From Lenisia limosa (taxonomy: Eukaryota > Protista > Breviatea), in contig LPNZ01007498.1 of assembly GCA_001655205.1 (NCBI GenBank), forward strand, positions 1 through 41,345: DNA of 41,345 nucleotides. Reading direction: 5' to 3'. Made by a program: the position numbers and the translations under genes. The notes under the pieces were generated by a model. The model did not search any database. It was not told the DNA's origin and worked only from the letters and a program-made list of their open reading frames with translations. Positions 2,979-38,661 of the stretch are shown piece after piece. How positions within the stretch are numbered: position 1 is the first letter of the stretch; every line of letters begins with the position of its first letter.

Positions 2979-3229
2979 CAGGAATCTCCGGGAGATGAAG
3001 TTAAATTGTTTTGTTGAGCGAAGGACTTGTATATTTTATAACCAAGTGTGATGAAGTGTTAGATGCGTGGAGAGGAGGTCTGGAGGAGGTAAGCAAAGCT
3101 GCTGGGCTGCTGGGAGAGATGCAAACTGTGTCACCGGAGGTGTATACTTGCAATATACTTGGTATCAAGTGCGTAGGTGGTGTAAGGTGCAGCAGGGGTG
3201 CAGTAAGGTGGGGCAAATGGGGGGGGGGG

Positions 3230-3308
3230 NNNNNNNNNNNNNNNNNNNNNNNNNNNNNNNNNNNNNNNNNNNNNNNNNNNNNNNNNNNNNNNNNNNNNNN
3301 NNNNNNNN
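3230..3308. other. Assembly gap (N run); others at 7781-7838, 10317-10432, 18545-18624, 28658-28748 and 28895-28988
   Basis: N characters. Several gaps abut G/C homopolymers or (TA)n tracts. Confidence 1.
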
Positions 3309-3527
3309 TAATTAATTACTCCTATTATGCGTGGGTGGTGCATCCTGATGTCCAATCATGACTATGGTCTATTCTTAACTAACAAATGATGACGAGCCAC
3401 AATACGTATCTGGATCGAATAGAGGAATGGAATAAAAGAGTGAAATAACTAACAATATTTTCCCATCAAACGAAAACAAATATCAAGACAATCCTCCTCA
3501 AAGACAATACATTCGATATACAGAAAA

Positions 3528-32860: not shown

Positions 32861-33928
32861 TTAACCGTTGGAGATCTCAGTCTTCTTTTGGTTTTGATTC
32901 AATTTGGGGAAGAACATAGCAACTAAATACACCAAGAAGGATGCCAAAGACAGCAGAGACAGAACACACCAAAGGGAGAACGCTCATAGGTACACCAAGG
33001 AAAAGGGGTTCTAAAACTAGGAGGTCAGGTCACATTCATAATATCTGATAATTGAAAAGGTAAAATTATTGCCGTACTTATATTATAAGGAACAGGTATT
33101 GATGAAGCGGTTGGATCTGAGCTGTAGCCTCTCCACGAAGAAGTTAAATGGATAATATTTCTTGGCATGCTAGACTAAACAAAGTGAGTGTTAATATTGC
33201 CAAAGTTCCTCATGAATCCCTAGCACAAGACTGGTTTAGGAGGACGTGGTTATTACGCATGGTCTTATGTACTTATTCATTAATCTACATATTCCCACTC
33301 CTTTGAAGCCTAAATCGTATTGACATCCTCGAGGGAGAATAGAATATGACTTATTCAATATGGATAGAATCTCCCTTGTCCAGTTTCAAGAGAGACTTTA
33401 CTGCAAAAAAAACCCCCAACTAAACTGAGGGTGCTCCAGAAACCTTACTGGATTCATAGGAACATAGTTGTTTTATAAATACATATTTGAAGTTGAAAAA
33501 TTGCCAGAATTTCACTTATCATGTTTAAAAATATAAATATTAGTTTTAAAGGGATAGGGTACATAAGATTTTACTCCCTTCTACTGAATGCTGACCTCAA
33601 TATTGCCATAACAGTCAGTATGGAAGATGGACTTCTCCACATCCAAGAGGGTCCTGCCAGGTACTCGCGGAATGTCCAACCGCATCTCAACGGGAAACTT
33701 AAAGGTGAACATCAATGACCTTAAATGCCATTATTTTGAACCTACTGTTGCAGGGTATGATATCTTGACTTCATAGGCTGAACTTGGCTCCATCCCAGCC
33801 GCTTCAAAAGACATTTGTGACCCGGGTACTATTTCCAGAGATAACTCTTTCCATGGCTCAATGAGAATATAAGTGGAAAAGCACTGTTTGAGGAGCACTA
33901 CTAGCAAGAAAGCGACAAGAGACTTCAT
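32861..33928 (-). CDS. Type I membrane protein, PGA1-like (GPI mannosyltransferase II accessory subunit)
   Basis: Signal peptide MKSLVAFLLVVLLKQCFS; GMEPSSAYEVKISYPAT, resembling the L-P---YEVKISYPA motif of PGA1-like proteins; C-terminal TM segment GVPMSVLPLVCSVSAVFGILLGVFSCYVL followed by a short tail. Confidence 0.55.
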
Positions 33929-34295
33929 CGTCTGTTATCCGTGGCTGTGGTGAATCTAGGGAAACTTGTTTATATTTATACCCTTATGGTGAATAGGGGG
34001 AGGGGGGAAAAGGGACGTGGAAGACGGAAACTCCTCCTCTACCCTCCTGCCTATAAAAACAACAACAACCAATCAAACTCAATCAAACTCTGGACTGCCA
34101 ATGGATCATATCTTGGGGGGGAAAGTCTTTTGGGGGTATAGCCCTAAATCCCTGCAGTGTACTCATTGTTTAGGTAAAAAAAAATTCTGGAAATTCCACC
34201 AGGATTCGAACAGGGATTACAATATAATTATCATTTTTGTATAGTTAAAGATAAATTAATCAATTACACCTTCATCTCAGCAAAGCAGCTCAAAA

Positions 34296-36351
34296 ATGGA
34301 GACCGTTCTCGACAACCTTCAGTTTGACTGTGGTCTTACACGTATGATTATTATTGCTGTGTACTATTGTTTACATTTATTCAGTTGATGCCCGTCAAGA
34401 GGCCTCTAAGAAAGCTTCTGATGTTTGTTGAGAGGCCATATTACTTTTTAAGTTGAATAACAGATTGAATTTTACTATATATAGGTTCTTAAGGAGCTCC
34501 GAAGCTCTTTTACTCAAGATCACCCTTCTTACAGAATTGTTGAGTATCATGTGAGCTCCTTTGTCTTGATTTTATTGGTAATTAATGATATAATGGTCCG
34601 CCAAGGGGTCCTTAGTTGATGGTATCAGAAGTCACGCTTCCTCCATTTTATATGTTCTCAGGTTGGTGGCTCTCAGTCACGCCGCAGTATGTCTCGTACC
34701 CACAACTCTTCTGACATTGTTCTCCTTATGAAGACTCCCCTTTCAACTCAGAACTGTGGTAAGTAGGGGTTGCAGAGGGCAAACCAGTCACACCTCTTTT
34801 TCAGTGTCAGGGCTAACACTTGCAGTTTCTATTCTCAACGACTGGAAGGACCACAGATGTGCCGATATTATCGGAATGTACAAAAGTATTGTCGAGAAAA
34901 TGGATAATGTAGAAATCCTTGATGATCAAAACAGAGAACTGAAGGTTAGAGAGAGGGTATTATCGTGATCTTTTTCTGACCTCCTCACTGTTTTACCCCT
35001 TAGTTCACCATTGGCGGACATATGATTTCTCTTATGCCAGTTCCCTACCTTGTAGCATTCCAGGAACCAAGCAACGAACATCTCTGCGAATGTGAGGGAT
35101 GATTTGTATTTTATTATGTTCAACATGACAGTGAAATCCCATTACCGTTCTAGTGGACCTCTTCATCCAACGCATGAACATTCTTGCCAAGCGTCTTGAC
35201 AAGGATACGATGTATCTTGCTGAACGCGCTTTTTCTATTATGACCGATAGAGTGAGTGGCAAAGTTACGTTTCAAAGTCACTTCTATCACCACCCCTTGT
35301 GTTTATTTAAATTAGCTTCTCCTCCGCCTTAACATGGACGTGATCGTGCAAAGAGTGTCAAGAATCGTCCATACATGGGCTGTGAAGCAGAGTGGGTAAC
35401 TTCGGGAACATAAACCTGGATTGTGCAAAAAAGTATAAGCAGGAATTGATTGACATAGAGCATGAACTGACGGACTACCATCTTGAACTTCTTGTTGCTA
35501 TGGAAACCAAGAAGCTGTTCCTTCGCCAAGGCTATGAATCACGAATTAACAAGTTTGTGGATGGTTCTTGTGGATTCATATATCGGGGACGTTGTTTTTC
35601 TAATGCATTAGTGAGGGGAAGAAGCCGATCAAGCTTGGTGATGTTTTGGTTGCAGTAATGGACGTTCTCTCTGGTGGCAAAATCGACATCCGTTGGAAGT
35701 ACCTTGATCTTAACAGACCATATGGTATGCCCTTAGGTCTATACAGCACCATCATTTACCCATCAGGCCAGGCCATGCTTGGAGATCTTTGCCGCATTAT
35801 TGATTCCAATATTTTCCGCTTTGACCCCTTCAACGCGGCGATCTCTCATGAGTATGTCCTTGTCCATCACTTACGAGTCTCTCATCAAACTTGACATATT
35901 ACCTAGGGCGTTTGCTGAGACACCTGAGGAGTTCAAGGCTGCTGCAGCCGGCCTTGCCAAGGCCATCCGTGATGAGAACAAGGAGGCCATTGAAGAGGTC
36001 TTCGGCCCCATCCAAGGCAGACCTGCTGAGTGCGAGAGGCTAAATTTGTCTATTTCCATTGCCAAATAAACGATTGGTTTTTGACCATTTTCAGCGCACC
36101 TGAGAAGCAGCGTGCCCCCAGACAACAGAGACAACGTCAGTCCAACAACAGCAATGAAGGCGGACAACGTTCTCGCCCCCAGGTTTGTATCACCACATCA
36201 AAAGACCAATTTAACAGCGATCCGGGAACACTTTTCACTCTGTAGACTACAATTGCAGATCATGAGATCAAGTACGAAACTAAGAGCAAGCGCAAGGGAA
36301 ACAAGAAGAAGACCACCCAGGAATAATTTAAGAGCGGCACATTATGGTTAA
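34296..36351 (+). CDS. OAS/DZF-like nucleotidyltransferase-fold protein, predicted catalytically degenerate
   Basis: Spliced: ...RIVEYH|VGGSQSRRSMSRTHNSSDIVLLMK...RELK|FTIGGHMISLMP...AFSIMTDR|LLLRLNMDVIVQRVSRIVHTWAVKQ...TDYHLELLVAME...VMDVLSGGKIDIRWKY...IIDSNIFRFDPFN. These blocks parallel OAS (GGS-GKGT...SDADLVVFL; FDVLP; KSLIRLVKHW; YALELL; LCIYW; ILDP). The stop is at 36326 or 36351 depending on the last acceptor. Confidence 0.65.
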
Positions 36352-36426
36352 GGTGTTTATGCATGATTAGAGCGAATCAATCAATCACCTTTCAATTTTG
36401 ACCCAACATTCTTTATTACACAATAA

Positions 36427-38661
36427 TTACAGTTTAAGGGTACAGGAAATTGGACAGTGATCACTGCCCATTACATCCCCATGAATTAGGCTCTCAGTAA
36501 CCTTCTTGTCGAAGCGGTTGGAGACAATGAAGTAGTCCAAACGCCAACCTACAAAGTCAGTTGATAGTATGGAAAATGAAAAGGGAGTACGAAATGAACA
36601 GCATCGACTTGGAATCCATGTAGCATTGGGGAAATGACATGGGATTCCCATATCAATAATGGAAATCCCAACTTATCCATAAGAACCACAAGTCAGCCTG
36701 TATCACATTCTATCATATGATAATGATATCCGATATGTATATTAGTAGTTTTATACATGACATATAGAGAGATGAGAAATAAAACAAGAGTATCTGGCAG
36801 AAGCCGTCCTTAGTGTATATCATGTAGAAATGAGAAACAATAAGAGTATCAGGCCGAAGCCTTTGTGTATAGCTATACTATGTCGAGATGGGGTTAAGAG
36901 CCACTCAATCTTTCTACGTGCCAATAACATGGGATTAAACTTAAATTTGAAAATGCACGATATAGTAGTATATTAATGAAATGAGAAATAAAAACACAAT
37001 ATTTAATATCTCTAATAAGCGTGATATTGTGGACGCCCAAGATTAGCGTGCAGAGGAGCTGCATTGGTACCACCCATATCACATTTCATTGCTTACCAAC
37101 ATTCTTGGCCCTCGCTCCACCGATGTAACTCCAGAAAGAGTATTTCTAAGTACAAATTAAAGACTACCAACGTTAACTTATATACTTGATGGAGGTGTCA
37201 AACCTTTGCATCTTCACCATTGCGTTTGCGCCAAGTATCAATAAAGCCTTCGGAGAGGAACTACAACAGTCAATTCAACCCACCACACCAACCTTCGTCA
37301 AACAGGCTCTTTCCTCTTTCGTGTATCCTGCGTTCTTTGCCTGGTTGCAGTTAATAATGTATAGTTGAATGTTATTCAAAAATATGAGTATGGTGACTTT
37401 TACGGTACAATATCATTATAAACCAACATTGGACTTTGGATTGGCAAGGTCATTGGGGCCATGGGCAACATTGGTATCTCCAGTCCAGATTACTGGTTTT
37501 TTCTTGTCTAGATTTTTCGCATTTTCCAGGAAGTCAGCTTCCCATTCTTGCCTGTAGTCTAATCTAAATGGAAAAGTAAGGTGAACGGCAAGATTTGATT
37601 TTTTGGGAGTAAAAAGGGTATTTTAAGGATAAATCAACCTGGCTACATTGAAAACAACACACCTCACAAGACCTCGACCGGAGTTTGGAATGTAGGTTGC
37701 AATTAAATAGAACTCTGGGAATTCAAGAGTGATCATTCGCCCTTCGTTGTCATGCTTATCCTTCCCTTGGGTATCAATAATTGGAAAAGGCCAACAGAAC
37801 TGACTATCTCAAAAGACATACCTAAGCCATATGTCACTGAAACTGGTTTGATTTTGCTTGCAATCAAAGTCCCAGCGTAGCTAATGAATAAATAAAGATC
37901 AAAATACAATTGATAATTTGTTTTTTCAAGCCTACCCTGCCTTTTCAGCAGCTGATGAATATATGTAGTAGCCAGGAAGAGATTTAATCATAAGTGCAAT
38001 ATCTGAAGACTTTGTCTCTACGCAGTGAATATGGTTGAGAAAGGGCCCATTTTTTTCCAAGTAAACGTCTTCCAACCTTGAAGGCAAACAATAGGGGGTG
38101 AGTCAAACTTATTAAGAAAAGCCTCGAGGGTGCCTTTCGAAGAGACGGCTTTGAAGCCAGCGATGTTCCAGGAGAATATCTTCAGATCTTTAGGGCTACA
38201 TAAGTAAGTTTTGCGTGTAATTCGCATTCTCACCCATAAATCACTCACCAGTCAACCATGTTATCTTTTTTGCCTCCTTGTTGATTGATACTGTTTCCGG
38301 TCTTATTGGTGACAGTTGTTGTGGTATTGCCAGCTCCTGAGAAAATAGGGGCAATTCTATTGCTATTAGAAATTATTAGCAACAAGATTCAATTTACTTG
38401 AACTCATATGGGATAATTTGCACCATTGCCTACTTTGTTGCCTTTGTTGAATTCGTGGCTTTAGCTAAAGGAATTATGGAAGCTACCAAAAGGACATCCG
38501 TTGCCATTTCTCCAATTCTAATCTCATCCATTCATTGCAACATACCATCCTTTTTGACTGCTGTGGCGGGCTTTGCAGCCTTTTTTGGTGTTGAATTTGT
38601 GCTTTTCTGAATACAATGAGGGGAAGATGTTAGAGAGGGCTCCAACCTTCTTGGCAACCAT
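36427..38661 (-). CDS. APEX1: AP endonuclease, APE1/exonuclease III family
   Basis: Lys-rich N-terminus (MVAKK|[13 protein letters not shown]...), [30 protein letters not shown]...[30 protein letters not shown]|[16 protein letters not shown]. Confidence 0.95.
36768..37035. repeat. Cluster of three partial copies of the interspersed repeat in the 548-nt last intron of APE1
   Basis: gagatgagaaataaaacaagagtatctggcagaagccgtcc (36768-36809); aaatgagaaacaataagagtatcaggccgaagcct (36828-36862); a head aaatgagaaataaaaacac (from 36978) followed by an inverted tail tatctctaataagcgtgatattgtggacg (37007-37035). Confidence 0.8.

Follow-up and report, generated by a model that had tools for sequence, protein, structure and literature searches.

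A spliced, expressed orphan gene of the breviate Lenisia limosa that probably encodes a degenerate OAS/CD-NTase-type nucleotidyltransferase

The DNA considered here, hereafter the window, is contig LPNZ01007498.1 of the breviate Lenisia limosa (assembly GCA_001655205.1) at its full length of 41,345 nucleotides, and the subject of this analysis is a 14-exon gene on its forward strand (34296-36326) whose product of 403 amino acids is a putative nucleotidyltransferase (NTase) pseudo-enzyme. A three-frame reading of positions 33900-36800 gives short GT-AG-bounded coding pieces on the + strand, and the spliced gene product is identical at each residue to a transcript-derived protein of 403 amino acids (P0006; EukProt EP01086 Lenisia limosa P017918, TRINITY_DN941_c0_g1 i3), which maps exactly onto the window in every exon. 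In a polyA RNA-seq run of 2016, a contig of 1141 nt joins the exons across 12 of the 13 introns, with the cuts at the GT..AG ends, and the companion DNA run carries an unspliced stretch of the gene; intron 13 lies outside this RNA contig, its joint being backed by the Trinity-derived proteins only. The Trinity proteins and the RNA-seq contig probably derive from the same reads and would then be two assemblies of a single experiment. Each of the 13 introns (window 34342-36245) is of GT-AG type, with lengths from 42 to 111 nt, and the 42-nt one (35725-35766) would remain in frame if retained, adding 14 residues. Within the 49-Mb assembly P0006 matches its own exons only, making the gene single copy, and no paralogue was found in the Lenisia genome. 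The gene is intact, spliced and expressed. An initial annotation of the window, made from the letters alone, had read here an intron-rich protist gene and proposed that its splicing be confirmed with RNA-seq; the RNA contig and P0006 bear out this reading, as well as the start at 34296, the coding sequence ending at 36326 instead of at 36351 as given there. The features of the gene, with the evidence for each, are as follows.

34296..34341, + strand: exon 1, with the start codon, residues 1-15 and the first base of codon 16; exact match to P0006, RNA joint 34341>34385
34385..34422, + strand: exon 2 (LDARQEASKKASD), small; mapping of P0006, RNA joints 34341>34385 and 34422>34485
34485..34550, + strand: exon 3, end of the N-terminal helix and strand beta1 (YRIVEYH); P0006, RNA contig, strand 45-52 in the model
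34662..34758, + strand: exon 4, with the G52-G53-S54 loop (34665-34673) and S66-S67-D68 (34707-34715), a degenerate D-x-D at the start of beta2; P0006, RNA contig, codons checked
34826..34944, + strand: exon 5, N-lobe helices; P0006, RNA contig, model
35004..35091, + strand: exon 6, strand HMIS131LMP (35019-35039), with Ser131 at the third carboxylate position and the conserved Pro134; P0006, RNA contig, codons
35154..35251, + strand: exon 7, inter-lobe region, of low model confidence; P0006, RNA contig
35316..35391, + strand: exon 8, C-lobe helix RIVH203TW (35361-35378); profile alignment, MAFFT, codons checked
35459..35552, + strand: exon 9, helix with YHLELL (35476-35493); P0006, RNA contig, profile alignment, codons
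35612..35724, + strand: exon 10, IDIRWKY block; P0006, RNA contig, codons
35725..35766, + strand: 42-nt GT..AG intron; RNA joint 35723>35766 (cut +1), absent from P0001 and P0006
35767..35851, + strand: exon 11, IIDSN and RFDPFN blocks (candidate 'hhDP' motif); P0006, RNA contig, MAFFT, codons
35907..36029, + strand: exon 12, last C-lobe helices and VFGP, aligned by MAFFT to the CD-NTase C-terminal 'vFG'; P0006, RNA contig
36095..36182, + strand: exon 13, the Gln/Arg-rich portion of the tail; P0006, RNA contig
36246..36326, + strand: exon 14, tail with KSKRKGNKKK (36282-36311) and stop codon TAA (36324-36326); mapping of P0006

A second Trinity isoform, P0001 (i2, 344 amino acids), starts at Met60 (window 34689 onward) and would thereby be without strand beta1 and the GGS loop.

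The initial annotation had described an OAS-like order of blocks across two lobes, with S-S-D in place of the metal-binding D-x-D, Ser at the third Asp position and a basic, Gln/Arg-rich tail, and all of these are present in the spliced protein. Every block it listed was found: GGS at residues 52-54, SSD at 66-68 within HNSSDIVLLMK and HMISLMP at 128-134, followed in the C-lobe by RIVHTW (200-205), YHLELL (216-221), IDIRWKY (265-271) and RFDPFN (296-301). The C-terminal tail comprises 58 residues with an isoelectric point of 10.5, 15 Lys plus Arg and 8 Gln, and KSKRKGNKKK at its end. Splicing does not restore D-x-D, the spliced protein still reading GGS, S-S-D and M-I-S-L-M-P, and two of the three metal-binding carboxylates are thus Ser. 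When the protein is set against the Pol-beta signature, hG[GS] and, 9-13 residues on, [DE]h[DE]h where the next strand starts, it reads V-G52-G53-S54, then 11 residues, then S66-S67-D68-I-V-L-L, the first acid being Ser.

The placement of this protein in the Pol-beta NTase superfamily derives from language-model features and from profiles. The ESM Atlas features recognised P0006 (recognition 2633), with the ten best named matches in one clan; the nearest feature clusters were OAS1_C/NTP_transf_2/SMODS at 0.95 (186-192 shared features), DZF at 0.94 (180) and the bacterial CBASS cyclases at 0.90, while the same search with the exon alone remained below recognition. The PADLOC profile of the CBASS 'Cyclase', PDLC00823, matched the protein with E 2.7e-4 over its whole length and 1.5e-4 over residues 1-312, its best stretch covering residues 13-75 (the N-terminal helix, the GS loop and the S-S-D strand) and being accompanied by a second one. 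A custom hidden Markov model (HMM) was built from 14 PDLC00823 matches out of 301 gammaproteobacterial genomes, all of them SMODS CD-NTases by Pfam, and it gave 6.6 bits (E 3e-4, single comparison) over two collinear stretches, in which positions 10-89 of the profile align to residues 6-88 and positions 169-201 to residues 196-228; this score was reached by one of 2000 shuffles of P0006 (P ~5e-4). A search with OAS1_C in 401 gammaproteobacterial genomes yielded one broken match.

In the HMM alignment GS is paired with G53-S54, D-i-D with S66-S67-D68 and r-l-l-K-y-W with R-I-V-H203-T-W, and MAFFT, run independently, left G53, S54, D68 and P134 invariant in 15 of 15 sequences (14 bacterial ones plus P0006) and set VFGP under the C-terminal vFG of the CD-NTases. 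In both alignments S66 stands opposite the Asp of all 14 CD-NTases, G53, S54 and D68 being invariant. A third carboxylate on a later central strand is lacking: in MAFFT Ser131 faces the D or E of the 14 CD-NTases, and it falls within strand 128-136 of the structural model. His203 occupies the position of the Lys that binds the nucleoside triphosphate (NTP) in CD-NTases and OAS, the profile pairing 'rlirllKyW' with 'RVSRIVHTW' and MAFFT agreeing. As reference positions for S66, D68 and S131 we take the triad D75, D77 and D148 of human OAS1; instead of the catalytic triad and helix Lys of OAS, the protein has S66, D68, S131 and H203. In OAS the triphosphate-binding Lys is carried by the L-V-K-H-W helix.

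The structural evidence derives from an AlphaFold2 model computed on the 15-row alignment (predicted local distance difference test, pLDDT, 63.8; predicted template modelling score 0.62; 197 residues at 70 or above), in which the 14 distant sequences sufficed for a pLDDT above 80 in a large part of each lobe. Its elements follow the order helix, beta1, GS turn, beta2 from S66, helices, three strands with S131 in the last, and helical lobe, and the model predicts the two-lobed architecture of an alpha/beta N-lobe and a helical C-lobe. Foldseek ranked porcine OAS1 (6.6e-7) and NF45/NF90 (9.6e-7) first in the PDB, then TUT1 and E. coli CdnC; the top Foldseek and VIA matches were 4rwn, 4ig8 and OASL 4xq7, and an Atlas search by shape returned OAS, CBASS cyclases, OASL and mtPAP. 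The structural scores of OAS1, CD-NTases, NF90/NF45, PAP and cGAS are tied, and it is mildly informative, as far as the model goes, that OAS1 and NF45 ranked above the bacterial classes represented in the input alignment. The membership of P0006 in the template-independent Pol-beta NTase superfamily, of OAS/DZF/CD-NTase type, is supported, and the protein very probably has the NTase fold. The superfamily assignment of the initial annotation thereby holds, the feature search, PDLC00823, the custom HMM and Foldseek all falling within the Pol-beta NTases.

By sequence the gene is an orphan with no detectable relatives. NCBIfam returned nothing useful for P0006, and a search of 1.84 billion representative proteins, run with the 79-residue exon (35613-35849) only, returned the gene itself and repeat proteins, a setting in which a breviate orthologue of 25-35% identity could escape. 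The true match in that exon search was P0001, whose cluster holds two Lenisia limosa EukProt proteins, i2 (344 amino acids) and i3 (403 amino acids). Among 5.8 billion proteins, a word-indexed search run with full-length P0006 and with its residues 28-240 recovered the gene itself only, and no relatives were found in the metagenome and viral contigs scanned. In a survey of CD-NTases across EukProt, OAS-like proteins were reported in 8 of 12 supergroups, and Lenisia (EP01086) was scored with cGLR 0, OAS 0, eSMODS 0, STING 0 and viperin 1, the same as the breviate Pygsuia (Culbertson and Levin, 2023; PMC10732462). Both P017917 and P017918 are absent from the supplementary files of that survey. 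The sole Lenisia CD-NTase contained in it, P012540, adjoins an Acinetobacter sequence of clade B07 with a branch length of about 0.1 and was therefore rejected as a bacterial contaminant of the transcriptome; the genome assembly has no SMODS or PDLC00823 match, so that this contaminant is not in the assembly.

Six-frame searches of the Lenisia genome were silent for OAS1_C (PF10421), DZF_N, DZF_C, Mab-21, SMODS, PDLC00823 and DnaN, diverged copies being invisible to this method; the KEN domain search did match, showing that the method works on this genome. DZF proteins form obligate dimers with a second DZF protein (NF90, ZFR or SPNR); no DZF partner or second DZF-like gene was found by the exon-wise search, a weak one that was silent on the studied gene as well. 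The sole KEN (Ribonuc_2-5A) gene found lies at C10041:6181-9333 on the - strand (locus L148; 37 and 28 bits), with an upstream protein kinase exon carrying an intact VHRDLKPANIL loop and a run of N interrupting the gene. Because the HRDLKPxN kinase loop is intact, this gene is IRE1-like, and it is probably IRE1 rather than RNase L, the effector that in OAS signalling follows the synthesis of 2'-5' oligoadenylate upon activation by dsRNA. The genomic search suggested in the initial annotation thus returned neither a paralogue nor, by this weak method, an NF90-like partner, and its one RNase L-like candidate is probably IRE1.

The data do not separate an OAS from a DZF affinity of the protein. 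The Pfam models OAS1_C, DZF_N, DZF_C, Mab-21 and SMODS gave no match even at E<=10: P0006 does not reach the gathering score of OAS1_C (PF10421), matches neither DZF_N (PF07528) nor DZF_C (PF20965), and has neither a match to SMODS (PF18144) nor a CBASS operon context, whereas the 14 bacterial rows all match SMODS, with E values down to 9e-46. In Pfam, the profile comparison proposed in the initial annotation returned nothing, and its placement of the protein between OAS and DZF is not established, the structural scores being tied; equally, with no match to a DZF profile, the protein does not nest inside ordinary ILF2 orthologues. OAS stands above DZF in every ranking, narrowly, and on language-model features P0006 is predicted to be nearest to OAS, DZF being the second-best family by features and by Foldseek. 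The suggestion of an N-lobe like that of NF45 and a C-lobe like that of OAS agrees with a comparison by eye, which is its sole basis and which we regard as a lead only. In the sequences printed in the supplement of PMC10732462 (file 31 for ILF2), the loop from GS to beta2 (GS....M...HN..D.V...K) shares 8 of 23 positions with ILF2, including M, H-N, D, V and K, and 6 of 22 with the OAS row, while the Pro three residues past the third-acid position, the x-W of the first C-lobe helix, Y-x-L-E-L-L and I-x-W-K-Y appear OAS/CD-NTase-like and not ILF2-like.

The likeness to the OAS1 family (PF01909 plus PF10421) comprises an order of blocks that, set by eye against the OAS rows printed in the supplement of PMC10732462, is the same in both lobes (GGS loop, x-x-D-h-V-h-h strand, h-x-h-h-P strand, R-h-V-x-x-W helix, Y-x-L-E-L-L helix, I-x-W-x-K-Y and h-D-P), and a similar size, with a core of about 350 residues; unlike OAS1, P0006 has Ser at the equivalents of Asp75 and Asp148 and His for the helix Lys. 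Inactive members are known within the OAS family, such as OASL and mouse Oas1b and Oas1d, and unlike OASL, which carries ubiquitin-like domains, P0006 ends in a basic Q/R/K tail. The DZF proteins (NF45/ILF2, NF90/ILF3, ZFR and SPNR) share the two-lobed NTase fold without the full catalytic triad. In NF45, described as metazoan, Val119 and Lys174 replace the first and third Asp, the middle one is kept and ATP is bound, with no transfer detected; NF45 and NF90 were inactive when assayed, and a homodimeric ancestor has been proposed (PMC3467086). The same pattern of loss, in which the first and third carboxylates are gone and the middle one persists together with the GS serine, is seen here in S66, D68, S131 and S54, a resemblance that is not proof of common descent, and unlike NF45, with its acidic tail, P0006 has a basic tail and a breviate, not a metazoan, as host. 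The CBASS CD-NTases (SMODS, PDLC00823) are the only families with a statistically supported profile match to P0006, with which they share the invariant G, S, D and P and the C-terminal vFG; unlike the bacterial CD-NTases, the Lenisia gene has 13 spliceosomal introns, a polyA transcript, replaced catalytic residues and no operon or CBASS effector context.

We therefore consider it probable, well short of certainty, that the gene encodes a real, expressed and highly diverged OAS/CD-NTase-type pseudo-enzyme, the degenerate site of which binds rather than synthesises. The protein would be specific to its lineage and have evolved very fast, with the two-lobed, template-independent Pol-beta NTase fold that OAS, the CD-NTases, cGAS and NF45/NF90 also have; it has kept the GS loop and, as middle carboxylate, Asp68, with Ser66 and Ser131 presumably in place of the first and third metal carboxylates and His203 in place of the Lys for the NTP triphosphate. 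Because Ser stands for two of the three metal ligands and His for the triphosphate-binding Lys, two-metal nucleotidyl transfer appears very unlikely, and because the GS loop, Asp68 and the cleft are retained, a ligand-binding relic is suggested, whose former active cleft may accommodate a nucleotide, a nucleic acid or both, in the way that NF45 still binds ATP. The predicted disordered tail, being basic, of low complexity and similar to a nuclear localisation signal, may add RNA binding or nuclear targeting. The role of a sensor or scaffold and the long residence of the gene, both proposed in the initial annotation, are not established.

Several observations weigh against this interpretation, and most of them would equally be expected if the protein were no NTase at all and an orphan whose OAS-like short motifs and order of helices and strands arose by chance. 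Pfam gave 0 families at E<=10 for the exons, P0001, P0006 and six sub-ranges including the lobes, and the PDB chain sequences, searched with the large exon, P0001, P0006 and residues 40-82, gave no match to OAS, NF45 or another NTase at E<=10. The statistically supported sequence-profile match to a Pol-beta NTase member family is weak, hhalign of P0006 against the bacterial alignment reaching only E 0.036 and a probability of 1.4%; the conserved-column test on the MAFFT alignment, a crude one, was not above shuffles (7/20 against 6.4 +/- 1.9), and the invariant columns thus carry weight only in combination with the HMMER result. By the documentation of the feature search, one in three shuffled proteins obtains 10/10 matches within one clan too. 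The AlphaFold and Foldseek comparison envisaged in the initial annotation did match OAS1 and NF45/NF90, with tied scores and on a model that was steered by the CD-NTase alignment, so that the fold matches are partly circular, while the single-sequence model reached pLDDT 40 and found no meaningful Foldseek match. The assignment of Ser131 derives from MAFFT and sequence context, without a significant profile alignment, and Ser or His might conceivably support an unusual chemistry. Nevertheless, three partly independent lines agree on both family and residues (features, at 0.95 with 192 shared and recognition 2633; PADLOC, at E 1.5e-4; our own profile, with 1/2000 shuffles), the motifs are collinear over both lobes, and the model exceeded pLDDT 80 in large parts of the two lobes with only 14 distant sequences, making a chance resemblance the least probable of the explanations considered.

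An only slightly less remote prospect is that the gene encodes an active NTase with a non-canonical centre, an OAS-like or CD-NTase-like signalling enzyme making an oligonucleotide or a cyclic nucleotide. An intact, spliced and expressed gene whose product keeps the GS loop, Asp68 and the general architecture of the cleft would suit such an enzyme, and OAS-family enzymes are widespread in eukaryotes (PMC10732462); against it stand the replacement of two of the three carboxylates of the two-metal site and of the triphosphate-binding Lys, the inactivity in assays of NF45 and NF90, which have such losses (PMC3467086), and the setting, no STING being reported for Lenisia (PMC10732462) and the sole KEN gene being IRE1-like and probably not RNase L. 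Somewhat more credible, and still rather unlikely, is a DZF lineage, in which the protein would be a pre-metazoan NF45/ILF2-like pseudo-transferase acting as a dimerisation and RNA-processing scaffold, perhaps as a symmetrical homodimer like the proposed ancestor of NF45-NF90. The carboxylates lost and retained are those of NF45 (PMC3467086), the loop from GS to beta2 is by eye closer to ILF2 than to OAS (PMC10732462), the DZF clusters reach 0.94 by features, and the length of 403 residues resembles that of NF45. However, DZF_N and DZF_C are unmatched in Pfam at any threshold, no DZF partner was found in the genome (a weak test), the tail is basic where that of NF45 is acidic, the K/H-x-W, Y-x-L-E-L-L and I-x-W-K-Y motifs of the C-lobe and the spacing of the Pro are by eye of OAS/CD-NTase type, and OAS is narrowly ahead of DZF in every ranking.

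If a pseudo-enzyme of OAS/CD-NTase type is indeed encoded here, it fills a gap in the survey of PMC10732462, which scored all breviates, Lenisia included, without OAS, and it is an example of a copy so diverged, and catalytically dead, that profile searches overlook it; how widespread the family really is and how often its members become pseudo-enzymes may thus be underestimated. Pseudo-enzymes are already known in the superfamily (NF45/NF90), and what is new is a sequence-orphan variant in a breviate. A compact, expressed, single-copy pseudo-enzyme of NTase fold outside animals, with the loss pattern of NF45, could show which role remains after catalysis is lost. OAS-type enzymes are thought to go back to the first eukaryotes. 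It is unlikely, if worth considering, that the branch leading to the DZF pseudo-transferases has here a surviving relative outside the Metazoa, an OAS-like protein in which the first and third carboxylates had already been lost as in NF45; if this were true, NF45-like pseudo-enzymes would have arisen before animals, near the base of Obazoa, and the homodimeric DZF ancestor would become testable. One sequence without relatives says little as yet on the origin of OAS or DZF.

As for the surroundings of the gene, the window contains 518 N, one run of which falls within the open reading frame 3011-3361. The downstream neighbour, on the opposite strand, has at 36430-36651 (-) its last exon, an Exo_endo_phos (APE1/ExoIII-type) one with GSDHCP (E 2.4e-4), and its stop lies about 100 nt from that of the studied gene, the two 3' ends being tightly packed, tail to tail.

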